DNA of 63,425 bases, the filler included, from Lenisia limosa (Eukaryota; Protista; Breviatea): assembly GCA_001655205.1 (NCBI GenBank). It is 5 parts of 5 records of this genome, joined end to end, with 100 filler letters (N's around TTAATTAATTAA, not from the genome) between each part and the next. Parts side by side here need not be neighbours in the genome. Positions count along the whole stretch, not along the records: positions 1 to 25,509 come from LPNZ01002260.1; 4 more parts are not named here. One strand, 5' to 3'. How positions within the stretch are numbered: position 1 is the first letter of the stretch; each line of letters opens with the position of its first letter. The notes beneath the pieces were generated by a model that saw only the letters and a list, made by a program, of their open reading frames with translations, was not told the DNA's origin and did not search any database. Shown piece after piece: positions 1,084 to 21,365 of this stretch. Position numbers and translations under genes: made by a program.

Positions 1084-1737
1084 AGAATCCAGTCGAGGCG
1101 ACCAGATCATCCAAAGATCATCAGTGCTTGCAAAATGTACTGAAAGTGGGAAATTGGAAGGAAAGGAGAGTTGGAGGAGAGAGTCATTGACTGAAAAGCT
1201 GAAAAGGTTTGAATGGTATTTCCTCATAAATGATCACATTCACCCTGACCTTCTCAGAGAGAGGTGCCCGATAGTTACACACAAATACACAATTACATAT
1301 AACTTGATAAGATGAGTTCGTTTTATTTCTTGTATCTTGATCTTCTTCATACACGTATTCTTCCTTTTTCTCTGCTCTTCTGGGGTGCAGAGCTTAATAT
1401 TTCAGTATATTAGATTTCTTAATAGACAGCTTCAAAAAAATGTTAAACATTTTAAACAGCTTTAGCTCCAAAATAGTCATAAATAGCGGTAACTCCTGCT
1501 GTGACATTGTTGTAATGTGGTTTTGATCTATGTAGGTATTTTACTAGAATGGATGAGGATGTGAAAGCAAAGAGAAAGAAGAGATATTTGAAGAAGAAGG
1601 CAGAAGAGAGGAGGAAGTTAATTAAGATGGAGAAGTTGAATAAGAAGAAAAGGCAGAAGCAAAGAAGAAAGAAGAATGATGAGGACTTCAATGTATTATT
1701 GAAGGAAGAGTTGCCAGTCTTAGACTTAGAATTATAA
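1084..1737 (+). CDS. Possible small Lys/Arg-rich hypothetical protein
   Basis: Purine-rich open segments RESSRGDQIIQRSSVLAKCTESGK...KRFE followed by GT, and DEDVKAKRKKRYLKKKAEERRK...LDLEL-stop after an AG. Start not found; low complexity. Confidence 0.25.
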
Positions 1738-2034
1738 TTATGAATATTAGAAGGGTTGATTTTGCTGATTGGTCTCAAGATGAATGATAGATATGAGGTA
1801 GTATAATTTATCATATTATACTGTATACATATTATATGATATAGTATATCATATATCGATATATATACTCTATATATAATACAGTATATTGAATGTTTGC
1901 TTGTTTCCAACTTCTCCCTTTGGGAACTGCTGGGTCACCCAATTATTAGCCTTATAACTCTGCGCACAGAGCTTTCTGTGTGACTATCCATTTCGTCTAG
2001 TCTTACAATTTATTCAGAACCCAATAATTTCAGA

Positions 2035-5000
2035 AAACTGTGATCGAAATGTCATCTCTTTTTGTTTCTTGAGGATTGTACAATGTGTAAAACACGCTCA
2101 TCAAGTTCCTGAAGGGAACTAAAACAATAAGCCTCAACACTGATAGATGGAGAAATTAGGCTTTATTAAACTCACTCTTGTAAATCCTCGCGAGTATTCA
2201 GGGCCAGGGTTACGTCAGCACTGACTGAATGAAGTTCTCGTCTATAAGTCAGAAAAGGTCAACAAAATTCATTAATCCTCATTGAATCTAGGATAAACAA
2301 GTTTACTTACCACTGGGTAAAAATAGCTATTGTATTCTGTTACTCTATAGTTCAGGATATTAATCTCCACTTTTTCTCCTCAAAATGGTAAGTACTAACT
2401 CAAAAATAATAATAATAATAATCTCTCAATGTATCAAACAATATTTGAATAAAATATTTTTTATGAATATTTGATAATTCAATCTCCCTAATGACTTTCG
2501 CTATTCCCTCAAACTGTAACTGAGACTTTAACAATCTCAGCTGAGGACCTGTCATATCTAATAACGATTGAAAGTCTCTATTTTCCTCAAAAGGGGACAC
2601 ACTGAGTGGTGAGAAGAAATTGTGAAGCCCACTTTATACAATCAGTTTGATTAGTCTCTAGTGAATGGTCTAAATCCTCCAGCGCGACTGCGTCGATTCC
2701 TAGCATTGTAAGTTCTCTTCCCAATAGGCTGATAATTGTATTTTACTTACTTTACCCTACCAGAGGACATTAATGATCGTGATGATGCATTGAGTTCACT
2801 TGAAGCGTAACATGAACGTGAAGCTGTGATAAGACACTCCAATTCCTCGCTTTCATCTTGAAGTATATTAGAGTTAGAGAAAAAGTTAACTTTATACTAG
2901 CTGAATAGAGAAAAGTCCCACCCACCATGTTGCTGTCGATATTTCCCCCAAAGTTCATCAAGGTCACAGGAGGGTTCAGACTCCAGCGGATCCATCATTT
3001 CTGGTGCCTGTGGGGATTACTATTCCATTCAAAAGTATATTTAGCTCAAACCTCTGGTATGATATCCTGAAGTTCCAAAACGTTGTCGTCAACAAGCCCA
3101 TCGCAGTCATACTGCATCCACGTTGGTACTGCCGCTGGAGGTGGCTCAAAAATAAACCTACTTCGGGCCGGGCTGGAGACTGACTCCACTGGCTCAGAGT
3201 CATCCAATATCAGAACATTTGCACTGAAAGGTGAATGCCATCATTTGACCACACATATTACACGATCTAATGTTGCTCACCTGTGATGTGAATAAGAATC
3301 ATGAGTGTTATTGCCGCCCGAAACACTATTGAAGCCAATAGTTGTATTATCGACAACCTAAATTTTGAAATGAAGTAACTGTCAAGAAAAACGACAAAGA
3401 AGGAGTGCTCCAATCAAGTAAATACATTCATGCTCCCTGTTGACCTCAGCACCGGCATCCATAGCTGTCCAGGCATGCCGCGCAGCAGCTGTGGCAGGCC
3501 GATCACACATATCCCTTGCACTCTGTCCCGTATGGAAGTGCAAACTGCTGTTCATGTAATTTCCAACTATCCAACCTGTGACTCCTGACTTGAGATCCAG
3601 CTGTTTTTGGTCTCATTGTGTGAAAGCTATTGGAAAGAAGTCGGGTCTGTGTTTGGCTCCCTAAGAGGTAAAACCCACAATTAAAACAGCTGGAAATAGA
3701 CATCTTACCCATTGTTTTTGGTCGATTCGGAAGACTCAATGATAGATAGTCCTCCAAAGATAGCGGATTATCTATTTCAAAATTTCCCTTACAAGATGAA
3801 GATCCCTTATTGAGTCAGTTACCGGAAAATAAGAATGGTGAGCCTTTCAGAAAATGAGAAAAACAATATAATATATAAAAAGAATATCAAGCAGAAGCAT
3901 CTTCCCCTTCACATCAATAAAAGGATATATTATAAAACAATTCAATTATTTTTTGCCTTAAAATTCCGAATAGAGCTTTCTGATTCATGATAAAAAATCA
4001 ATAAACATTTAGCACTAAAGTCCAACCTGTTTTGGTGATATAAAATTTGGAGAGTTCAATTGAGTCAATTCAGACAGATTAGCTGTTTCAATTTGATCTA
4101 AATCGTAAATATGCTCATGAAGGAGAAAGGGATAATCATTTACCTGGGTGTGGAGGTGAGGCTCGGCCACTTTTCATTTCAGCTTTACCCCAGATTGACG
4201 CAAGAGGGTCTTTTTCAGGATAATCTGAAGAATGATGAGGAAACTACATACTATCATATGATAAAGAAGCACATTATATGATACATTATGGGATACGTCA
4301 TATTTTTCATGTTCTCTATCATAGTGAAATTTCATTAAAACTTGCGATGCTTTTGGTGGTATGATGAGCAAACCAGGAGGTGACCCAAGATGACGAATAC
4401 TCATAGGAGTGGACAACGGACCTTGTAAAGCTTCAGAATTTCTAAAGAGTCAACGGTATATTGCCTGAACTATTCAAAGTTATTTTCACAGACTCACGAA
4501 TGAGAAGCTGTTTTTAGGTCTAAATGTGGAACATTAGTAGCACCAATTTCTAAAAAAATAATATAACCTCACTAGATCTTCAAGTTACAAAATGTTCAAC
4601 ACTCATGGTCAAATTTGCAGTCAAGCAAGAGTAATAAAACTTGTATCATATCTTTTACCCAGAGGTGTTCCACCTTTTGGTTGAGTGGCATTCCTTTGAG
4701 AAGTGGTGATAAACTCAACGTCACTGTAGAGCTCAAGTTCCAGGACACCTGGTGTTGCGGGAGGGGTGTCAAAAAGGTCATCATCAGCATCTTCCAGTAG
4801 TATTCGCGAGTTTACTTTGGTTCTCTCAACCCACGATCGGTAGAACTGTTGTATCTTCACAGCTGAAGCTGGGGTGTGAGGACAAAGATGTCAAACACTT
4901 GTTTACAAAGATAATAGAGAATGGCATAAATCAAAGCCTCTTACAATACTCGAGACGATCTTGACTTTTGGAGACCACATTTTTTACCTCCAACTCATTC

Positions 5001-6605: not shown

Positions 6606-9600
6606 ATGGATTTAACCAGACCGTTGGTTAAATACAGCATTCTTTTGCTACTTGCTGTTTTAGGTGGGTTTAGTCTTGCAGAAGAATTTATTATTTAGCG
6701 TTTTCTGTCAGGCAGTTCTCAGTTATTCGTTTTGAGGTCGTTATTCATGAATTTGATCCGTAAGAGAGGCTAATCGGCTGACAAGACTCCATTCTTGCGT
6801 TTTTTTTTCCTTTCCCCAAATTTTTCTGACTGTCTCAAGCTACTTCAACTACCGCTCAACCGCTTACCTCATCAAACACGGATTTTACTCATTCCTGAAC
6901 TGGTTTGACTCAGAATCATGGTATCCTCTGGGTCGCATCGTTGGCTCAACAGTGTTCCCTGGTATTATGTGGACTGCCGCCGCCTTTTACCATGTCCTTG
7001 ACGCACTTAATTTGACTCTTACCCCAGTCGAGATTTGTGGGTTTGAATTGATTCAGCGTTTCAATATGTGTGTCTTTCATCGTAACTTTCACCAGGCGTG
7101 TTTCTGGCACCCTTCTTTGCTGGCCTGACCAGTTTTGCCACTTTCCTCTTGACTAGAGAGATGCACGGTTCTGATGGCGAGGGTCTCTTTGCTGCTGCCT
7201 TCATGGCGTTTGTTCCAGGTATCCCGACACATAATATTTCACTCATAGCTTGTTGGTACTAATGCTCCAGGCTATATCTCAAGATCAGTTGCTGGTTCCT
7301 ATGATAACGAAGGTGTTGCCATTTTTGCCCTGATCTTCACGTTCTACCTATGGGTATGTTGCATCGCTGCTTTTCTCGTGTTTAATAATTTTTGATTCTT
7401 CAATTATTGAGTTTCCACCCCCAAGTCGTTTTACCTTTAGGTTCGTGCTGTGCGCAAGGGCACCATTTTAAGTGCTGTCTTCGCTGCCATTGCCTACTTC
7501 TACATGGTGGCTGCCTGGTGGGTGTTTTCCTTCTCATGCTCTCCTTCATGCTCTTTCAACTCTGTTTTTCATCCATCAGGGGTGGATACATTTTCATCAT
7601 CAACCTTGTTCCTCTCTACGTTATGACTATGATTGTTACCGGCCGATTCTCATCTCGCCTCTACGTTGCTTATTCCGTCTTCTTCACTGTAAGATTCGGA
7701 GAACAGTGTACTATCAATTTTGGCTAAGCCGAAGTACATTTAGGAAAGAAACCGACCGTAACCTGAGAGATTTATATTATAATACATTATAATCAGCAGT
7801 TAAAGAATGATGTGTTATCGTAACATGATAACCTTTTCTCACCCGCTCAAGGTTGGATCCTTCCTTGCTATGCAAATTACTTTTGTCGGCTACAACCAAG
7901 TTCAAACTTCGGAGCATATGGCTGCTATTGGTGAGCTTTTAACTCTGTTTGTTCATTTGTTTCTTCTTATATATCTTTCTTATTCATCTAGGAACGTTTA
8001 TTTTTGTGCAGCTTCTGGCTGCCTTTAAGCTCGGTCGTTTCTTCTTTACTGATGATGTGTCATACCTGAGGTCTGTTCAGATCATTTCTTAGTTTTTTTT
8101 CCTCCTCTTTACTATGTCATCTATATTCTGCTGTTTCATCTTTGGCCTGACCGAACCCTTTAGATTTGTCAAGGCTATTGCCACTGTTTTGGCTGTCCTT
8201 GTGACTGGTGCTATTACTGTGGCTTCTGCAACTGGTTTGTGGAGAAAAGGCACTTCTCTGTTTAGATTTGATTTATTTTTTTTGTTTAGGTTACATTTCT
8301 CCCTTCAGTGGCCGTTTCTACTCTCTCCTTGATCCCACTCACGCCAAGGGTAGGTATTTATCATGGGTGGATATTTGAGGAAACAAGGCTATCAATTTTT
8401 AGCTGTCATTTCCTTAACGTCATCATAGACCATGTGCCAATTATTGCCTCAATCTCCGAGCACCAGCCCACTGCTTGGTCTTCTTATGTCTTCGATCTCC
8501 ACATGTTGACCTTTCTCCTGCCTGCCGGCCTCTACTACTGCTTCAAAAACCTCAATGATTCGAACATCTTTGTCATCCTCTATGCCACTACCATTGTCTA
8601 CTTCTCTGTATGGGGTTAAATGAATAGAAGGGACGAGTCTCTTCTTTCAAAGATATAATATGGTATTGTTCGGTCAGCAAAAGTGGAATTGACCTTTCAG
8701 GGAGTGATGGTGCGCCTTATGCTTGTATTGGCCCCTGTGGCCAGTATCATGGGTGGTGTTGCTGTGTCTCAGATCTTCAAGGCCCATATCCCCAACCTAA
8801 TTATGTCAGAAGGACAGAAGGTAACTGGGTTTTCAATACTCTGGTGCAGATTGCGCTAACAAGAGTCTCACTTTACTTTAGGAAGAGAAAGATATGTCTG
8901 GAAAGAGCAAAGCCAAAAAAGCTGCTGCTGAAGAAGTCAAAGAGTTGTCTAGCCAGGTGTGTCCCCCCCCCCCCNNNNNNNNNNNNNNNNNNNNNNNNNN
9001 NNNNNNNNNNNNNNNNNNNNNNNNNNNNNNNNNNNNNNNNNNNNNNNCCTGCAGAGACGTCTCTACTCCATTGTCATTGTTGGCGGTATGGCGCTCCTTC
9101 TCTTCATGTTTGTCTCCCACAGTGTCTGGGTCACTAGTGAGGCTTATTCATCTCCCAGTATTATCCTTTCTGCTAAACAGGTTAGTTAAATGGCAATCAA
9201 CCTTATTTTGGAATCCATAATTGTTTGGAATCACCTTCCAGCCTGATGGCTCGCGAGTGATCTTCGATGACTTCCGTGAGGCCTACTATTGGATCAGAGA
9301 CAACACTAAACAAGATGTGTGAGGGAGTAGTAGTAGCCTTTGTTTGTTATTCAACATTCATCAACAAGAACAAGACCTCCTCGTTGACGTTTTAGGCCAA
9401 GGTTATGTCTTGGTGGGACTATGGGTATCAAATGGCTGAACTTGCTAACAGAACCACGATTGTGGACAACAACACTTGGAACAACACCCACATTGCGACT
9501 GTGGGCAAGGCCTTCGCTCTCAATGAAGAAGGTGCCGCCGAGATCCTGAGGGACCTTGATGTTGATTATGGTAAGGGGGGGGGGGGCGTCAATTTTCTCA

Positions 9601-10487
9601 AATAATTTTTTTTTGAATCTACCATAATTTTTTTAGTTCTTGTTCTTTTTGGTGGAATGTCAGGATACGCAAGTGATGATATCAATAAGTTTCTCTGGAT
9701 GGTCCGTATTGCTGGCGGCGTTGATCCTGCCATCAAAGAGGCGGATTACTACAGCAATGGACAGTTTAGGTGAGGCTTAGCTTTTTGGCCTTTTTTTTTA
9801 ATTCATTGATTCTTGCTTATTCAATAGAGTTGACGCGAACGCTTCAAAGACAATGAAGGAGTCTGTCATGTACAAGCTCTGTTACTATCGTTTCGGTGAA
9901 CAACGCACCGATCACAGTAGGAACGGCGTAGGATATATTATAATATATAATATTGAGATAGTATATATTACTTATATCATGTGATATCATGTTTTCTAGT
10001 TTAAAGGGTATAGTATCATATACTAATATTACTATTTAAAAAAATATATAATACATATGATAATATTAGTTTATCATATCATATCAGAGTATTTTTTTAT
10101 TTTTTTTTTAGTGCCCTCCTGAACAACTCTAGGAATGCCAGCCGGTTATGATCGCGTTCGTCACGTGGAAGTTGGAGACAAGAACATCAAGGTTGGGGTT
10201 TTTGAAGACATGTTTAGTTCTCACATATGAAAATGACCCAAAAATAAAGATGGTGTGCGTGTAAATACAATTATTAACTGTCCGAGAGGACTTGTTGCGG
10301 AATAACTCCTCTAGCTCAAATACTTTGAAGAGGCCTATACTTCTCGTCACTGGCTCTCGAGGGTTTTCAAGGTTGGCTTAGCTTCTCCAGTCCAAGTGAT
10401 AGATTATTGAGATTTGGTTGCTTGTTTGTTATTCTGAATCTTATAACCCAGGTGAGAAGAGACCTTCTTCCTCCTCGTGATGACTAA
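6606..10487 (+). CDS. STT3: Oligosaccharyltransferase catalytic subunit STT3, about 20 introns
   Basis: [49 protein letters not shown] (about 9405), [28 protein letters not shown]; ends RVFK|[14 protein letters not shown]. Confidence 0.97.
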
Positions 10488-10586: not shown

Positions 10587-13500
10587 TTAGAAGGTTTTGT
10601 CAATGACATGGTCCTCAATCACGCACATCAGTTGCTGAGGGTGGGGGGGGGGGGGTANNNNNNNNNNNNNNNNNNNNNNNNNNNNNNNNNNNNNNNNNNN
10701 NNNNNNNNNNNNNNNNNNNNNNNNNNNNNNNNNNNNNNNNNNNNNNNNNNNNNNNNNNNNNNNNNNNNNTCAAATATTCACACACGAGAGCTTGAAATAT
10801 TAAGTCAATCAAATTTGCCACATTTAACAAGCATTTTACCAACCTCGATGTCCTCGAAAGTGTTCATGTATCCGACAGATATGCGAACTGAGCCGAGAGG
10901 CTTGTTCATTTCGTCGATGTCCATCTTGCCTCCACAAGTGTGTCCTGCCTGGAGAGACGGTGGGTGAAAACTTTCACAAAATACGATATACCTATCACCA
11001 TACTACGATACAAGTCTTTATTCGTGGAAAATTAATTCTCATCTAGTATCCAGGAAAACAACATTGTGTATATAAATGGTCCAGAGTTGGGGAGGAAATC
11101 TTCGCATAACCTCAACACCAAAAGCCAGAAAAAAAACTTGCACAAAGTTTACGGAACAAAGTTTTTCTTGTCGCATAATCTCAAAAATATGGATCCAAGC
11201 CTTACCACTGCTACCTAGAAAAGTATTGACTATTTTGCCTATACTATGTGAATATTAAGCTGTATCCTTATTCCTGTCAAATCATGAAAAGCATAGTATA
11301 AGAAGGCCGCCACTCTTCCTTACTTTTTGGTTGCGTTTGACATCATCTGGCGACATGGACAGGGAAATATGACAGGCTCCGGGGTTACAGAAGCATCCCA
11401 CACGAATGTGAATGTTGTGTTTAGTGCAGATGTTACTGCAACATAAGTATGTAAATTGCATTCAAAGATGTAATAAAGCCTCTCCCCCTCCCCAGACCTG
11501 ATGGTATTATAACCAATGTAGTTTCCCTCATGACTGATGAAGGAACAATTGACAATAGGTCCCTGAGTTGTCAAAAGTTATTTCATCAAAAGATTCATTC
11601 CTTAAATATACTCACACCAAAGAACAAGAGTTACCGCCTCACCTGTACATTTGCGTCATTGTTGGTGTGGTTACCAACAACATGGCAGACATCTGTACCA
11701 TTGGAGTGTCTCAGTGAGGTCAACCGCTTGAACAAATACTGTTGGGTGTGAAGGTGAAAGAAAAATACTGAGGGAAGCATATTGAAGGGCGACAGTGATC
11801 TCAAACAAACCTGGGTCAAAGTGTGGGTATGGGCCTTGATGTTGTCGAATCCAAGACGATGCAGGATCTAAGCAGTCAAAAAAAAAGGCAAAGTGGCAAA
11901 AGATACGGGACAAATGTATGACCCCCCCCCCCACACACACACGCAGCAGCCAGTCACCCACCTTGAGTCCATGACGGACAGCTCCGATGGAGAGGAAAGA
12001 AATTGTTCCGTCTTCATACCGTTCAACAGGGTTCTGAAAAGGTGACAAGCGTGATGGAAAAAAAAGGAAACAAGGTATTCACCTTTCGGAGTGTTTTGTA
12101 GTCTTCGCCAGATAAAGTAACAGCAACAGATCCTCCACCCCAATAGCGCTTGCGTAGAAGTTCAATGGATTCTAAAACGTTTAAATTTATACAACTTAAT
12201 AAATAAATTTAAATGGAAGAGTAGTGAAAACTGTATTTTGAAGAACCCTCCCCTCTCACCTCTCTTAGCAACCAATGCGCCGAGGCCAGTAGGGTAACCA
12301 AACATTTTGTAGAACGACATTGACACAAAGTCAGCGTCAACCTTACTCAGGTCCAAGTTGCTTGTAGGAACCTGGGGTTAGAGTTTTTTTAAAAGAATAT
12401 ATCAGGCCGACAGAGCTGCAAAATAGTTCCAAAACCAACCAGTGCTGCTGCATCCAAAAGAACAAGCCAACGAGCAGTAGGATCTGAACCTTCAGATACC
12501 TTGGCCTTGCCAGCTCTAATATCGTTAGTCAAAGATGAAGCTCAAATTTTCCAAAAAACAACCATTGACCACCTGTAAAGTTCTGGCCATTCGAGGCTGT
12601 ATTTACGTCCGGTAAAGTTACATTCACCAGGGTACGCGAAAAGATGGAACACCTGGCCAGAGCAATCAGGATTTTTTTTTTCTAGTGGGAGGGGGGGTTA
12701 CAAACAGAGAAGTTACCCCTCAGATCGAATTATTTGTGAGAATAACAGTAAGTGCCAAACTGCATACCAATATTCTTGTTGACAATAACGCGTGCGGGGT
12801 TGAGAGGGTCACAGGGTGCGGCCATTGAAACCTGAGTGCGTCACAAATAACAGAAAAGGAAACATAGTGTTTTTAGTGCAATCATGAATTATACCCCCCC
12901 CCCCGCACTTGAGCGCCATCACGTGAAGCGTACTCGCGCATTNNNNNNNNNNNNNNNNNNNNNNNNNNNNNNNNNNNNNNNNNNNNNNNNNNNNTGCAGG
13001 GCGTCCAGGGGAAGTTCTCAGCAACAAGCTAAAGGTCAAATGGCAAAAAAAACGACTTTTGAGAGACCCAGATTCAAGAAAAAGCATTACCTTTAAAGCA
13101 GCGGTGCAATTTGAAGTAAACAGAACACAATGGGTTTCTTCAGTTACATTGAAATGACGCAGAATATCTTCACGAGCAGCATCAACCATCTAAACCATTA
13201 ATCTCATTGCTGGAATAATTGCAAAAATTATATCAGAGGCTGGATGAATAAAATCACATTCAATTTTTCCAATTTAAGAGCACTCTACCTTTGTTGCAGC
13301 AGAGGAAGAGGGGTTGTCGGAATCTTAAAAATGATTAATTTTACCAAGGAAATCAAAGACAAATTGACAGAGAATAACTACAATAAAAAATAAAATGAAA
13401 AGCAAACATGAAAAAGAAGATATAATAAAGAAAACCAGAGCATACGGGGGTTACCAAAGGTTCGGCTTTCGAGTTCAGCTTTAACTTCAGCAATAAGAGA

Positions 13501-14015
13501 TCTGTATCAGTCAGCTATCGAAAAAAGGGAATCGCCAAACCTTGGGTAAATTGAAGCCCCAGTAGAGTCCAAATAGCAGTCTCCAAGGCCTTCACTTCCG
13601 ATCTATAATAAAAATGAAGCCTGCTATTTGAATTCTGTAAAGTTTCTCTCCGGTTCCAAAAGAATCGGTAAGATTTCGATATTTATTGAATATATACCGA
13701 GAAATTCAGTTTTTTTTTCTAGTAACGAAGTGAAGCCCTAAGCGGCTGATGTCAAACGTATATACACATGTGCATAACAGTGCTTCAGTGCCACAATAGC
13801 CCACTACCTTGTCACCGTTCTGCAATTGAGCAACCTGGAGAAGATTGGGGAAATCATCACGCCTACAGAGATAAGTACAATATCATATGTATATCATAGG
13901 TGTTTTCCGAGAAAAGTTACGATTTCTCCTTCCACCTGAGATTTTCAATACGGCCGTCAAAGCCATAGTTGGGAAAATGCTTATCAAATATTTCGCGACG
14001 CTGAGGAAGAGGCAT
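10587..14015 (-). CDS. MOCOS: Molybdenum cofactor sulfurase-family PLP-dependent cysteine desulfurase, NifS-like domain only (no C-terminal MOSC domain)
   Basis: [27 protein letters not shown]|[47 protein letters not shown]-lysine motif [22 protein letters not shown], catalytic-Cys motif [30 protein letters not shown]|[18 protein letters not shown]. Confidence 0.9.
13638..13740. mobile_element. MITE-like palindromic element, degenerate copy 1 (MOCOS intron)
   Basis: Right end GAGAAATTCAGTTTTTTTTTCTAGTAACGAAGTGAAGCCCTA matches the family; left end decayed. Confidence 0.55.
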
Positions 14016-14168
14016 ATGAGGCTGGCCTGCATCATCAGAAAAGGATGTTACGCCTGGGTGACTGTGCCTCCTCTCCTACCAAGTTCTCCTACATCAGCTT
14101 CTACACGTCTTCTCTTTGCGTCACGTTGTCTGAATGATCAGTTCTCCATCCATGTCATCTAATCCCAC

Positions 14169-17100
14169 TTACACAAGACACTTCTCCTTCTTGTCATTGA
14201 GCACTTGCATATCCTTCTTTTCTGCCCAGTCACGAACGTCTGCATGTGCAAACCTGGTCAGGGAGGAGGGTAAGTAAATGAAATTGCAAAATGAATATAA
14301 TGTAGAAATGAGAAAAAAAACTTGAGAAATAAAACAAGGTACAATCAGGCCGAAGCTGTCAAAACCATCATGCAAAGGAAAATATGATGTGATTATAGCG
14401 TAATATTATTCCCCCATTATTTGTCTTACACAACTCTGTGCACACAGTGAGTGCCTCCCCAGCATACAAATGACATTACTGGCATGATCAGCACGTAGTA
14501 TTATTATATTATTATATTATGTATCACAACCCTTTTTACCCACTTTTGAGCTCTGAACGATTCAAACCCTCCAGAAATATGGCAAATCTGTTGGCCTGGT
14601 CTGTGATGACGCAGGAACTGTTCCGCAAAGTATGCCGCCCTTCCAATTGCACAACTCAGGATGATAGGACTAATGCAATAAAAAAAAAGAGAGACGTGCC
14701 TCGAAAAACCAAGCTGAGCAAAACAATACCGATCAGTAGGCAGCTCTTTGATTTTGGCTCGGATCTTGTCAGAGGGAATGGACTGGACACCTATGTATAA
14801 AAGATGTTGCACCATAATAAACACTAGCGCGGGATAAAATGGGAAGATATCAACTAATACACAAGGGTTTGAAGAAGTCTACCAGTGTATCACCCCTTTA
14901 TATGGTAAAGAGACATGAATAGTTGGGAGAATAAAGAGTTGCAAGTTGCCCTACCAGGGATGTGGCCTGCAGTGAATTCCCAGTCATAACGGACATCAAT
15001 GAAATAGGCATTGGGGATTGCAATTGCTTCAAGCCACGAGAGAGGCTGAATGGTAAGCCAAAAAGTCAAGTTGTACAACGACAACGAACAAACACTGCAC
15101 CTTTGAAACGCCTTCGAGCACATGTGTCGCGGACATGGCCAAAAGATTGATGGGGTCTCTGAAAATATCAATACCTAATGATTTGAAAGCCTCTAGAATC
15201 CCCAAAAACCTAGCGGAATTGAATTGAGGTGCATAGCACAACTCAGCGTTCTCCAAATCATAAACTGTGCCTGACTTCTGCATGCACATACTACAAGGTC
15301 AGTACTCTTATGAAGTTGAACTCATCACACACCTCACAACATCCACACGCTTGTCCACTCCTTCACAACGTCCAGAAGCTTGGAATCCCAAAATACGACC
15401 ATCAGACTAAATTGTCAGCTGAACAGGGTTTCACAACATCAAAAGATCCAACAAGCTTTTGTATTGCAAAACGATTATCATTTGATTAACCCGTGAACTA
15501 ACCTGGTAGATGAGCTTGGAATGGATTTTATGGGCAAGTGGATAGTAACCTGCGTGCTGGTTTGCGTGATGGAATAGTACATGGTAGTCGGAAATACCTA
15601 AAGAATAACAACAACAAAACACATGCTTGCCCACTACCCCCCCCCCCNNNNNNNNNNNNNNNNNNNNNNNNNNNNNNNNNNNNNNNNNNNNNNNNNNNNN
15701 NNNNNNNNNNNNNNTCCAACTGAACCAATCGTGACACCGAAAGCACCAATAACTGCGCTTCCCTTTGTACCAGGATAAACTCTTTGGCGTCCTAATAGTG
15801 AGAATATTAGCATTGAAGATGAACACACCATTTCTCCAGGATGATGTGATGTTTTCAGCTACCAAGCGGCCTTGCCGAGCAGCTGGACCCGCAAGGGGTA
15901 CCTGAGTATTCAAACCCGTGACCTGGTGCTTGACTTCGATAGCGTCTCCAACAGCCCAAATTGAGGGGATACTAGAGTGCAAGTGCTCCGTAACAATGAT
16001 GCCTCCTCTTTTGCCGATCTATGCGTTCAACTCAGAAATGCTCAATACTTTCGCTATCATTACATTGACAAATCAAAACACTTTGTAATAGAGGCATATA
16101 TTAGTATATGATATGTAGTATATAATATGATATATTACATATACTACTATGTTAAGAAAACTTACAATGATATGATATGATTAGTACTTCGAAATAAAAA
16201 GTATAAAAACCAGTCAACACCATCACACAGCTTTACGGAAGCCGAAGTAGTCAAATCAAGTGAAATATTAAAGTGAAACCTCCTGGTTACCTTGCATCCG
16301 GCCATCTTTGCAAGCACGTTCTAAAAAGTCATAAACCATATGACAAGGCGTTGAGATCATGAGAAAGGAATACCCTACCCACCTCAGGGGTCACACCAAT
16401 AGCCATGATGATAATGTCAGCAGCAATCTCTTTGTTGGATTGAGTAATCACCTAAAAGAATAAAAAAAAAATGATTAAAATATTCTCTTTAGCCCACAGT
16501 TAACCTTGAACCAGCCTTGCCCTCTTCAACACGAGCAAGTCCGTCACCCAACACCATTCGGACTCCGGCCTTCTCAAGTTCTTCATGAAGCCAAAAGGTC
16601 ATTTCTCTGTCAACAACCGGCAACACCTACAAGTCATAAATCCCTTGATCTCAAATGGATATCATGTCATCTGAGTCAACATACTTGATCAGCGATATCG
16701 ACAAGAGTCACGTCAAGGAGCTGTTTGCGAAGATTCTATAAAATGATCAGTGTTCCATCCACGTCATATACTACATACCTCGGCCATTTCCAACCCAATG
16801 AAGCCGGCTCCAACAACAACAGCACGGCGGGGTGCGGGGCGCGAGGCAAGGAAAGCTCTAACCAAGTAAGGTACACTTGAAACAGATATCCCACCAGGTA
16901 ATAACCAGTGTATGATAAATGTTTAAGAGAACAATTTTATCCAACCTAATGTCTCTAGCATCCGGGATGTTCCTGACAGTAAAGACACCGGGGAGGTTGA
17001 GGCCAGGGAGGTTGGGTTTAATGGGCTTGGCACCAGGCGCAAGAACAAGCTCATCGTAGGCCATCGACTCAGTCTAAGATGTTATCCTGTGTGACAAATT

Positions 17101-17867
17101 TTTATTTTCAAAAAACGCTTGTTTTTTTGGGGGGAAAACTGAATCGGAAAAATCACTTGCCCTCAAAAAACAAAACACTCAAAATCCAGTCAAAACTAGA
17201 CAAATTAGACGACAATCTATCTGACTTAAGCGCAAAGAAAGAAAGCCAGAACCTTAAATAAAATACACATTATTACGTAACGTTAGTGGAGTACACCAGT
17301 AATGTTCGCGGGAAAAGCTCTCGTTTGCTCCGCAACAGAAAAAAAAGTTTCATCACTAGATTGACTGATGGAACAGTAAACATGGCGCCTTCGGGAGAAA
17401 ACAGAACCGTGTTTGTTTTTTTGTTTTTTTTTAGACATCTGCCCACCTCTCCATTGGTGAGACGCGTATAGGTGAGGACTTTAGAGGAGGAGTCAACACC
17501 AGTGACTTCAGTTGAGGCAAAAACTCGTACATTGAACTCCACTTCAAAGTAATGAGGTGTTACAATCACCAACTAAAAGGTCATTTACAACATAATGATG
17601 TAAAAGACTTCATCCGAGGCAACTTACATTTTCTTCGTGATCAACAACATCACCAACGTGGTACGGAAGTCCACACTAAAGATAAAATAGGCTTTATATT
17701 TCATACAAAAGAATATCACAAAACAAAGAGCTCACATTGGCAAATGAGACGTGTGGGGATCTTTCAAACATGATGATTTCACATGATTCGTCTAAACGAC
17801 GTAGTCTAGCAGCGCAAGCGGCACCGCCGGCTACACCACCAACAATCACAACTCTTCTAGTTGCCAT
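14169..17867 (-). CDS. cdr: CoA-disulfide reductase-rhodanese fusion (CoADR-RHD / NADH-dependent persulfide reductase Npsr-like), about 19 exons
   Basis: MATRRVVIVGGVAGGAACAARLRRL (FAD Rossmann), SFAN|CGLPY redox Cys, YDELVLAPGA, VVVGAGFIGLEMAENL (NADH), IWAVGDAIE, PLAGPAARQGR, ELCYAPQFNSAR|DPIN, rhodanese FIDVRYDWEFTAGHIPG, active loop ILSCAIGRAAYF, HISGGFESF. Confidence 0.92.
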
Positions 17868-18054
17868 ACTGTTGTTTTTAACAACCAACTGCTCAACTCA
17901 CTCCTGGGTGACTGGGTGACGAAATAAGAGAACGCGTGAAAAAGCTGGGGGAAAAGCTGGGAAAACAAGAACCAAAATACGTGAATTGAATAGCTTACGT
18001 TGTTGGGGCTGCTTTGCTGTTTGTTGTTGTTGAGTTGTTTTTAACAAGTCTTTA

Positions 18055-20676
18055 ATGATGCAGATTAATATCAAATGGTCAGCTGGGCCTGGCTTCGAAA
18101 TCGAGGTTTGGGGTTGTGGTGATGTTGACGTTGTGTGGTGTGCATTCAATTGAGACCAAATTGCCTTGTTAACCATTAGGTTGAAGAAAAAACTCTAATT
18201 GAAGACTTCAAGAAGATGCTTGCTGAGGATAAGACACTGGTTCTGGAATCAGTTCGTCTCGTATGCTCTGGCAAGTTGTTGAAGGATGGGTCAAGTCTTG
18301 CTGATTATGGTGGGTGTCTTTCCAAATGGATTGTTGAAAGATTGAAAAATGCTGCTTTCCCCTATTTTCTCCATTTTTATCTCTTCCACTTCCACAAGTT
18401 TCAATACAATTACGGACATGAGTAGGAAGTGGTTTTATTTTTAAGGTTTGAAAGAAGGAGCAGTGATCCACATGGTTGGACGAAAGATAAAAACTGAGGT
18501 TGGAGGTTGATATAATTGCCCATAAAACCCACAGGTGGTTTTGCTCTCTTACTTTTGAAAGTACCTCAATCACATCAGGAAAAGCAGGTAGTTGTGGAAA
18601 AAGAGGAAACCATTTCGGCATCTGTCCCTGCTGCTGCCCCTGTCCCTGCTGCCCAGCCATCTCAGGTTAGTGAAATCATAGTTAAGATTCGTTTTTCGTT
18701 AGTGTAGTACCCTTCGAATAAGATCATAATACATATTTTATGCATTATTATGTTCAAATCTTCTTCTTTTTGTTTATTTTTAATCCTTAATAAAGACTCG
18801 CCAACAACAACCTTCCGGTTACGTGAATCATTTTGCTTCCTTTGGATCAGGCAGCAGTAATATGGCTGAAATGATGCGTCATCAGCAAGAAATGCTCAGA
18901 CAGAACCCAGTACGTGTTGTACTCTTAATTTTCTCCGCCAATATTACTTTAGAAGTGCACCCGCACTCATTATTAATCCAGGAAATGATGCGACAAATGA
19001 TGCAAGATCCTAGTGTACAGCAAATAATGGCCAACCCCGAGGCACTTCGGAATATGATGCAAGGCAACCCCATGATTGAGGTATAATTGTTGACAGTTTA
19101 ATTTTCGCAACATTCTTTCAGATCTCCCTATGCTCATCATTTTGATATTTTTTTGTTAATTTTTATTTTTATTTATTTTACTTGCAGTCACTTGTTGCTG
19201 AAAACCCGGAACTTGCGACTGCTTTTGAGAATCCAGAAATGATACAGCAAATGCAGCGAGCAATGACTGATCCTGTCTGAAGATGATTGATGAGATGATG
19301 ATTTGAAAATTTGCCGTTTTTTTTTACTCTTTCAGGCGTATCAAACTCAGTTGCAACAACAAATGGACAACTCTTTGCTCAACATGGAAAATATGCCTGT
19401 ATGAAGTTTTCCTTTCTTTGGATGTTCTAAAACTGTAGCACGGCATGCAGGCTATTCATGCAGCCCATCGATCAATGACTCAGGCTGAAGAAGCGGCCGC
19501 AGGAAGGAGTCGTGGCGAAGGTAAAATCTGGTCAGTTTTGTTACTGACGTAAAAGATAGAGCAACAGCAGAGTCAAACCTCAATGCAACACTGAGGGAAA
19601 CTGATAATCAGATGAATCAACACGCCCCTAACACAGATGCCCTCCCTAACCCTTGGGCGGTTTGAGGATATCCCTTTGGCATTGTGTTTTTGAATTCTGT
19701 GGATGAGTTAATTGACAATTTAAGGCAGCTGCAGCCCCAGGAATGGGGGGGCCTGCTGCACCCCAAATGTTCAATCCTATGATGGGTAACCCAATGGGAG
19801 GAGCAATGGGTGGTGCTCCGGATATGGCCCAGATGCAGGTTTGTCTTTGAACAGTTTCCAGCACCGAGATTTATTTTTTTGCTTGGACGAAATTTTCTTT
19901 TAACACCCTGATTTTCTTCAGCAAATGATGGAGAACCCAATAATGAGGCAAATGATCAGTGGTGTTCTTTCAAACCCTGATCAATTGGAGGCAATGGTGA
20001 GTTCTAACTTAATTTTGGTTGACGCCTGTAGACTGGAAACAGAGAATTGGCTGATATGATGCGCAATAATCCTATGATGAGACAAATGTTCAGTAACCCT
20101 GATACCCTTGTTGGTGGTGTAAGCTTTTTATCCTCAATATTGGTTTTTTTGGGGGAAACGTTTCTCTTGAAATAATTTTTTCTCCAGAGTCAAATGTTGA
20201 CCCCAGAGGCAATGCAACAAGCTGAACAAATGCGAGCTATGATGTGGGTGAGAGTATTGGAGTATTGTGAGAATGTTTTTATGACTTTTTCAGGGGAGGT
20301 GGAGCTCCAATGGGCGACTTTGGTATGGGAGGTAAGCCACGATGCAATCATGTATCATTTGACTGTCTAGGAATGGGCAATTTCCCTTTCGCCCCTCGTC
20401 CATCAGCAGATACACGTCCACCAGCTGTTGGCGTGGCAGAAATATGGAATTATTTCTGAATTATGATTATTTTTTCATTAGTTATCTAAAATTTCTGACA
20501 TTCGCAATTTCATATATTTTCCCTTTTTTTCATTTTTTATTTTGTTATAGGAACGTTTTGCTGCCGAAGTTGCCCAACTTAGAGAAATGGGGTTTTATGA
20601 TGAGGCAGAGAACCTGAGAGTCTTAACCATTACCAATGGCAACGTTAATGCCGCTGTAGCTATTTTGCTTGGATGA
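18055..20676 (+). CDS. UBQLN: Ubiquilin/Dsk2 family UBL-STI1-UBA ubiquitin shuttle
   Basis: N-terminal UBL (VRLVCSGKLLKDGSSLADY), Met-rich STI1 repeats (MMRQMMQDPSVQQIMANPEALRNMMQGNP), C-terminal UBA ERFAAEVAQLREMGFYDEAENLRVLTITNGNVNAAVAILLG-TGA. Confidence 0.93.
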
Positions 20677-21365
20677 CTTCTTTGGTGGATTCGTTTTGAA
20701 ATGTATAGCCCAACCCCCTCTGAACCAGAGTAACTTGCAAGCAACATCAGGAGCCAAGTCCGGGAGCAAGCAAAAAAACATTACTTTGGCTTCTCACAAT
20801 ACCGGTGTCCGCGTTAGGATGCAAATTGTATTACCAAACGTACCCAACACACACACACATACACACACACACAGTGAGTTTCCCAAGACATTCTAATGAA
20901 CACCACAAGGAAGAAAGTAAGCGATAATTGTAGAGAAAAGAAAGAAAGTAGTATAGCAAGTTATTCCCACTACACAACATATAAGAGAGAGAAAAAAAAA
21001 AAAAAAAAAANNNNNNNNNNNNNNNNNNNNNNNNNNNNNNNNNNNNNNNNNNNNNNNNNNNNNNNNNNNNNNNNNNNNNNNNNNNNNNNNNNNNNNNNNN
21101 NNNNNNNNNNNNNCATAGAGAATGATATCAACAACATCAAGAAAAGAAGAAAATTTGATATAGGGATGATTTCCACAACACCAAGAAAGATGTGTTAAAG
21201 AAGAAAATAAGAAATTGAGAAGAATAGTCACAGGGAATGATTCCCACTGCAACTGAGAACTATTAAGAAGTAGAGAAGAAGGAAAGAGAAACTGGAAAAC
21301 AACAAAACACAACACAACAAAACACACACAAGACAAGAAGGCTAACAAAGGGAACCATCATCAGC

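Follow-up and report, generated by a model that had tools for sequence, protein, structure and literature searches.

Does a persulfide reductase gene lying immediately upstream of a cysteine desulfurase gene amount to a sulfur-relay module, or are the two simply neighbours in a compact genome? The question is raised by contig LPNZ01002260.1 (C2260) of the protist Lenisia limosa (GCA_001655205.1, a 49.0-Mb eukaryotic assembly of 11,727 contigs), which forms positions 1-25,509 of the window, the whole 63,425-nucleotide (nt) stretch of DNA analysed here, filler included. Two sulfur genes lie on C2260, head to tail on the minus strand and each intron-rich: gene A (14169-17867), a CoADR-rhodanese of the NAD(P)H persulfide/CoA-disulfide reductase type (CoA, coenzyme A), and gene B (10587-14015), a class V cysteine desulfurase of the MOCOS-N type. 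An earlier note on this DNA had read them as a candidate module in which the rhodanese of gene A could stand in, as sulfur acceptor, for a MOSC domain missing from gene B. In our assessment the balance tips slightly towards two separate, intact nuclear genes in a genome with short spacers, whose closeness signifies nothing functional, apart perhaps from regulatory surroundings in common; the adjacency as such is most likely an ordinary neighbourhood.

Because the segment 12995-15647, which runs from within gene A across the spacer into the 5' portion of gene B, is free of gaps, the adjacency is backed by real sequence and not by scaffolding. Our gene models agree with the earlier note on two same-strand genes separated by 153 nt, from the stop of gene A at 14171-14169 to the ATG of gene B at 14015-14013; that stop is reached by canonical splicing (donor AA/GTGGGT at 14544/14543, acceptor at 14254), though it lies inside a possible intron start, GTAAGT. 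Such a spacer is typical here, since the others in the window measure 176 nt (between gene B and an STT3 gene that converges on it, tail to tail) and 187 nt (between gene A and a ubiquilin-like gene, head to head), giving a span of 153-187 nt; the caveat already voiced in the earlier note, that adjacency in so compact a genome could be chance, fits these values.

Gene models and predicted activities

For family and homology comparisons, either single exons served as queries or known proteins were aligned to the DNA of the window with tblastn. Exons are short in the genes of C2260 (10-63 codons), and the introns of genes A and B measure 37-375 nt, with a median near 62 and GT-AG boundaries throughout. 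Gene A comprises 19 exons and 18 GT-AG introns, starts with the ATG at 17867-17865 and encodes a product of about 580 amino acids (aa). Its exons, all on the minus strand, lie at 17867-17736, 17675-17628, 17572-17447, 17073-16946, 16857-16779 and 16735-16685 (E1-E6); at 16626-16498, 16451-16383, 16320-16291, 16018-15829, 15791-15715 (E11, running into an assembly gap) and 15597-15503 (E7-E12); and at 15406-15333, 15290-15210, 15158-15101, 15045-14955, 14790-14730, 14669-14544 and 14253-14169 (E13-E19). The shortest intron of both genes, at 15792-15828 between E10 and E11, is 37 nt long and GT-AG, and the frame breaks unless it is removed; several others measure 39-46 nt. Read-through from E18 to 14504 was considered and rejected, with a codon score of -1.5 per codon and a good GTGGGT donor at 14543.

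The assignment of gene A to the CoADR-rhodanese family, made in the earlier note together with that of gene B to the cysteine desulfurases, is borne out for both genes by matches in Pfam, in PDB and among homologs. Specifically, the exon pieces of gene A match Pyr_redox_2 of Pfam in order (positions 2-34, 96-135, 137-158, 178-213 and 252-291), with further matches to Pyr_redox and, on E16 and E18, to Rhodanese, and their translations contain the dinucleotide-binding motifs VIVGGVAGG and VVVGAGFIG. Closeness to solved CoADR-rhodanese (CoADR-RHD) enzymes was judged on one exon, exon 10, whose best PDB matches are 8a56, 3ntd and 3icr (E 4e-12 to 4e-11, as compared with 1e-9 or weaker for NADH oxidases); it is about 50-55% identical to these enzymes over 57 residues, and its best NCBIfam match is TIGR03385, CoA-disulfide reductase. 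In tblastn, full-length homologs of both bacterial and eukaryotic origin follow the chain of exons with an identity of about 41%.

In CoADR and Npsr, the lone active cysteine sits in an SFxxC motif. The corresponding redox-active motif of gene A spans E1 and E2 (17628-17750, minus strand) and is divided by a 60-nt intron (17735-17676) into SFAN and CGLPY. The rhodanese active-site exon, E18 (14544-14669, minus strand; PIILSCAIGRAAYFAEQ...GGFESFRAQ), covers Rhodanese profile positions 63-101 and aligns with the stretches CAVGQRAYFA and CQVGLRGY; its CAIGRA loop (14653-14636) retains the cysteine, with the arginine one place earlier than in the CAVGQR or CQVGLR of homologs. The catalytic cysteine motifs reported in the earlier note (CAIGRA, SFANCGLP and, for gene B, RVGCFCNPG) are real, except that SFANCGLP is not contiguous in the DNA.

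Gene A has three features in common with the solved enzymes Npsr of Shewanella loihica (3ntd), the CoA-persulfide reductase (CoAPR) of Enterococcus faecalis (8a56) and the CoADR-RHD of Bacillus anthracis (3icr): the Pyr_redox_2 core, the SFxxC cysteine and, at the C-terminus, a rhodanese domain whose active site contains a cysteine. Unlike them, gene A is a eukaryotic nuclear gene with 18 introns, a CAIGRA loop and a lysine- and arginine-rich C-terminal tail. Gene A encodes a CoADR-rhodanese flavoprotein in which, by analogy with these enzymes, NAD(P)H, flavin adenine dinucleotide (FAD), the SFANC cysteine and bound CoA would reduce persulfide or polysulfide sulfur, carried by the rhodanese cysteine, to H2S. 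Homologs with the same domain order, similar length and about 41% identity to the window exons occur in Chlamydomonas reinhardtii (CHLRE_06g271200v5), Chlorella variabilis, Guillardia theta and EukProt sets, although these eukaryotic proteins are no closer to gene A than bacterial or cyanobacterial ones. They are annotated only as 'Rhodanese domain-containing protein', and since such unnamed homologs already exist in green algae, Guillardia and EukProt, a eukaryotic CoADR-RHD is not new in itself. Additional paralogs resembling CoADR or NADH oxidase, at least two in number, were seen on C1855 (5291-7830 of its extract), C4090, C1860 and C3079; rhodanese exons are not detectable downstream of the C1855 copy.

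Gene B likewise comprises 19 exons (D1 at 14015-13936 through D19 at 10634-10587) and 18 GT-AG introns, ends with the TAA at 10589-10587 and encodes about 490 aa, counting split codons and an assembly gap. Aminotran_5 (Pfam) matches exons D11 and D18, and the closest solved structures are type II cysteine desulfurases; a protein-atlas comparison with a 37-aa exon yielded no more than weak leads to Aminotran_5. Exon D11 (12261-12371, minus strand) carries the SFYK motif with the lysine for pyridoxal phosphate (PLP) and is 73% identical to its counterpart in one bacterial homolog (L044), whereas the translation of exon D17 (11324-11434, minus strand) contains the catalytic cysteine loop RVGCFCNPG. 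We take the PLP lysine of SFYK and the persulfide cysteine of GCFCNPG to be motifs of the NifS-like domain of MOCOS, and the naming of homologs by the Joint Genome Institute (JGI) agrees. Gene B would presumably act as a PLP-dependent cysteine desulfurase, the lysine of SFYK binding PLP and the cysteine of GCFCNPG taking the persulfide from L-cysteine. With genes A and B, two families known chiefly from work on bacteria gain eukaryotic members that are rich in introns.

MOSC-less desulfurases and the conservation of the pairing

Gene B shares with MOCOS and ABA3 the NifS-like domain with its PLP lysine and persulfide cysteine, but those proteins carry a C-terminal MOSC_N and MOSC on the same polypeptide and gene B does not. 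Its product stops about 15 residues past the last NifS-like helix, with neither MOSC_N nor MOSC, and the last two exons (D18 and D19) match, without any loss, the stretch ...AVRISVGMVSNFEDVERFLEFV... at the C-terminus of homologs. As only 176 nt separate this stop from the end of STT3, on the plus strand at about 10410, the locus has no room for missed MOSC exons, and the earlier description of a desulfurase lacking MOSC is correct.

This lack is the rule in a large bacterial family, whose stand-alone members of 460-500 aa with both motifs number in the thousands. A degenerate DNA pattern for FYKxFG[YF]PTG retrieved at least 120 bacterial desulfurase loci, whose open reading frames (ORFs) mostly encode 460-500 aa; among 120 listed homologs, the SFYK motif is present in 116 and an RxGCFCNPG-type loop in about 106. 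Ten of the bacterial ORFs were compared with Pfam and showed Aminotran_5 only, with no MOSC. Longer bacterial forms (814-887 aa) were considered as MOSC fusions and rejected, Pfam showing either a fused methyltransferase or read-through from upstream. When one bacterial homolog was used in a word search, 8000 candidates were returned, the best 120 of which carry PF00266 only; many of these 120 are named 'molybdenum cofactor sulfurtransferase' by JGI, and this naming ties the stand-alone family to MOCOS independently of the motifs. The family ('cysteine desulfurase family protein') occurs mostly in Chloroflexota, Acidobacteriota and Bacteroidota and is uncharacterised, and NCBIfam holds no specific model for it.

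Gene B has the length, both motifs and the C-terminal end of these stand-alone SFYK/GCFCNPG class V aminotransferases, its exons being 38-50% identical to the 460-500 aa homologs, but differs from them in being eukaryotic and intron-rich. Judged by its sequence, it is an ordinary member of a large stand-alone MOSC-less family and not a MOCOS that has lost its MOSC. Because lack of MOSC is the family norm, there is no lost function for a neighbour to replace, and the proposal that the rhodanese replaces a lost MOSC is not supported; a second MOSC-less desulfurase paralog in the assembly, with no CoADR beside it, speaks against it too. In this divergent paralog (C10144, plus strand, about 1354-4409 of its extract; motifs SLYKIFGYPTG and RSGCTCNPGAC) the NifS-like domain is likewise followed directly by a stop, and upstream there may be an N-terminal membrane segment (MAFRDRLQ...LILRTLLGCAVVILVFIACSSIIW).

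Conserved linkage, which the earlier note proposed to look for, is not supported either. None of seven other CoADR-RHD loci (Chlamydomonas, Chlorella, Tetradesmus and four bacterial ones) has an Aminotran_5 neighbour, the surroundings of the 120 listed bacterial desulfurases, inspected to about 4 kb, contain no CoADR, and no desulfurase lies beside the CoADR-like paralogs on C1855, C4090, C1860 and C3079. When 1.84 billion representatives were searched with exon 10 by phmmer, identity did not rise above 69%, and the best-matching hits examined were located on bacterial contigs. A fused CoADR-desulfurase architecture was found neither among the best 120 desulfurase hits nor among the 150 exon-10 hits checked for it, so that a CoADR-rhodanese-desulfurase protein is present in none of the database hits examined. 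In Chlorella variabilis (GL433846.1), a gene for cysteine dioxygenase (CDO_I) lies about 200 nt from that for CoADR-RHD, and a rhodanese gene lies two genes upstream, a small sulfur-metabolism neighbourhood in another eukaryote.

The junction between the two genes

The alternative that survives best is that the two ORFs form one expression unit acting as a relay, be it as a co-regulated pair, as a bicistronic or overlapping transcript or, less likely, as a fusion spliced through 14079-14027. We regard such a unit as a tentative possibility, clearly second to separate genes, and a true fusion would take perhaps a third of its share. Several suggestive features were found in the DNA between the genes. 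The stop of gene A lies within a 43-nt intron-like element (14130-14172, minus strand; GTAAGT...CAG, with the TAA at 14171-14169), a paralog of the true 43-nt intron between E5 and E6 (16778-16736). The two have a 26-nt core in common (ATGACRTGGATGGANNACTGATCATT) and show 3 differences, and nowhere in the 49-Mb genome outside these two sites does the core recur. It looks as though an intron had been copied within gene A (16736-16778 and 14130-14172), in what would be a clean example of copying inside a single gene. Were the 43-nt element spliced out, the ORF of gene A would continue into a possible 3' extension (VQRDAKRRRVEADVGELGRRGGTVTQA and a stop; 14048-14129, minus strand) of 27 codons, ending at the TAA at 14050-14048. 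The codon log-odds of this extension are 0.77-0.84 per codon and frame-specific, above all 979-1321 intron windows and all 714-822 windows of two other spacers, with 26 codons scoring as coding in the frame that splicing predicts. Speaking against removal of the 43-nt element, the exon side of its donor (GT/GT) is poor, its position weight matrix score of -1.2 falling below those of all 34 true donors.

A candidate 53-nt intron (14027-14079, minus strand; G/GTAGGA ... CTGAT ... CAG/), if used, would join genes A and B in frame, and its donor (3.9) and acceptor (5.1) score within the range of true sites. The acceptor is strong, is accompanied by the branch-like motif CTGAT and lies 12 nt before the ATG of gene B, and three phase-compatible donors could fuse the ORFs; we estimate that a constellation of splice sites permitting fusion would arise by chance in roughly 10-15% of cases. 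Use of the candidate intron is weakly supported, and its 5' half is purine-rich and looks coding, not intronic. Fusion is also opposed by the in-frame stop of gene A and by the ATG of gene B, which stands exactly at the natural N-terminus of its domain.

Several observations nonetheless weigh against two separate genes that merely happen to adjoin. With the 43-nt element spliced, only 32 nt would remain between the ORFs, less than transcription units that are independent in the usual way would need. The gene B start is closely preceded by two ATGs in other frames, which would hinder scanning unless they were spliced out or skipped by a very short 5' untranslated region. A rare 12-mer, CAGTCACCCAGG, occurs 37 nt upstream of the gene B ATG (14053-14064, minus strand) and in an identical copy 35 nt upstream of the gene A ATG (17903-17914, minus strand), with a near-copy adjoining at 17911-17920; by a rough estimate, its presence at both ATGs has a chance probability of 1e-4 to 1e-3, a coincidence noticed only post hoc. 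No close relative of the source organism, in which true synteny could be read, was found in the searched collections. Among the 120 listed bacterial desulfurase loci, nine have a rhodanese gene within 1.8 kb, upstream and on the same strand in eight of the nine, which we estimate to be about ten times chance; with nine such neighbours, the desulfurase family does keep company with rhodaneses in bacteria. In six of the 120 (L014, L051, L053, L075, L116 and L125), the order is a tandem rhodanese, a YeeE/YedE-type sulfur transporter (Sulf_transp) and the desulfurase, in an operon-like arrangement. MOCOS-type desulfurases without MOSC constitute a large, uncharacterised stand-alone family that sometimes shares an operon with rhodaneses and YeeE/YedE transporters.

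The 12-mer is not a general motif. Its 10-mer core (GTCACCCAGG) was considered as a genome-wide promoter motif and rejected: it has only 65 copies, compared with 46 for the control, and the 62 that lie elsewhere in the genome, unbiased with respect to start codons, have no link to them.

The chemistry of a relay has published precedents. The rhodanese STR18 receives persulfide from ABA3, and proteins in which a desulfurase and a rhodanese are fused occur naturally (PMC8931425); known relays include the CD-Rhd fusion of Pseudorhodoferax and the pairs of IscS with ThiI or YnjE (PMC8931425). A transfer from gene B to gene A, from the cysteine persulfide of the one to the rhodanese cysteine of the other, would follow the same chemistry, and by this analogy a hand-off is plausible. 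Of the relay interpretation in the earlier note, it is therefore the step from a MOCOS-type desulfurase to a rhodanese that stands on published precedent (ABA3-STR18, PMC8931425), whereas MOSC replacement, conserved linkage and the low-oxygen setting assumed there are not supported. By contrast with ABA3-STR18, CD-Rhd and IscS-ThiI/YnjE, the rhodanese of gene A is part of a reductase, in which the persulfide would be destroyed and not passed on. In a single unit, sulfur would move from the desulfurase cysteine persulfide to the rhodanese cysteine and on to CoA persulfide, from which NAD(P)H would release H2S, so that cysteine could serve as an electron sink or as a controlled source of sulfide or persulfide.

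That a single unit, whether a bicistronic or overlapping transcript or a CoADR-rhodanese-desulfurase fusion, couples cysteine desulfuration directly to NAD(P)H-driven persulfide reduction appears doubtful. If true, no earlier case of a persulfide reductase connected in this way to a cysteine desulfurase would exist, and the unit would open a self-contained route from cysteine and NAD(P)H to alanine, H2S and NAD(P)+, and hence an electron sink or regulated sulfide source in a eukaryote; a new eukaryotic way to make H2S or dispose of reducing equivalents would follow, and a relay into a persulfide reductase would itself be new if shown. Set against this are the occurrence of the pairing or fusion nowhere else, the poor donor of the 43-nt element, the coding-like 5' half of the candidate intron and the 12-mer copies elsewhere without a link to start codons. 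The case for a module consists of adjacency where everything is adjacent and of several weak or after-the-fact hints, and separate genes remain our preferred reading.

Molybdenum cofactor genes, assembly and surroundings

A different role for the desulfurase, in which the CoADR-RHD would be irrelevant, is that gene B or its paralog sulfurates the molybdenum cofactor (Moco) of xanthine-dehydrogenase-family enzymes, with the MOSC carrier encoded separately, divergent or finely split, or outside the assembly. Exons of the MoCoBD_1 type of xanthine dehydrogenase and aldehyde oxidase do occur, on three contigs (C4182, C261 and C4412), and the JGI name of the bacterial homologs points the same way. 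The assembly gave no signal for MOSC (PF03473), MOSC_N (PF03476) or MoaC in a per-exon family search of low sensitivity; the search is weak on split genes, and because its PF00266 run missed gene B itself, the MOSC and MOSC_N blanks prove little. We nevertheless consider a Moco sulfurase unlikely: both desulfurase paralogs stop right after the NifS-like domain, and the bacterial stand-alone homologs adjoin sulfur transporters and rhodaneses, not Moco genes.

That the pair is an artefact, produced by a wrong scaffold join, by bacterial contamination or by decayed pseudogenes, is hardly credible, for although the assembly is fragmented and three N gaps here each lie beside a G or C homopolymer run, the junction is gap-free, each gene has 18 spliceosomal GT-AG introns, 1010 checked codons contain neither an in-frame stop nor a frameshift, and the neighbouring STT3 and ubiquilin genes are eukaryotic.

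None of the three assembly gaps disrupts gene A or gene B, and none lies between them. The gap in exon D7 of gene B (12943-12994) leaves its flanks in one frame if it is 52 nt long, and the paralog predicts about 15-18 hidden residues. A second (15648-15714) covers the last part of E11, reaches into the intron that follows in gene A and hides about 10 residues, homologs having 10 between the E11 and E12 alignments. The third (10658-10769) falls in the last intron of gene B, whose flanking exons D18 and D19 carry the C-terminal helix on without loss and match ...NFEDVERFLEFV... of the homologs in full. Runs of 10-14 G (or C) adjoin all three gaps (10635-10657, 12890-12905 and 15635-15647), and a further G/C homopolymer run lies in one intron (11921-11931); the assembly apparently breaks at homopolymers.

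On C2260, G+C content is about 40% and AT skew tracks the direction of transcription. The two sulfur genes are flanked on the plus strand by the STT3 oligosaccharyltransferase gene (6606-10410, its end approximate) and by the ubiquilin-like gene (about 18055-20700), whose product has a UBL domain, STI1-like repeats and a UBA-like end. Elsewhere in the assembly, positions 24382-25480 of C6212, only 1.1 kb, match the eukaryotic small-subunit (SSU) ribosomal RNA model from end to end (464 bits), and a normal 18S gene is present on C6123; the short version could be a strongly reduced or internally deleted gene, or that of another organism.

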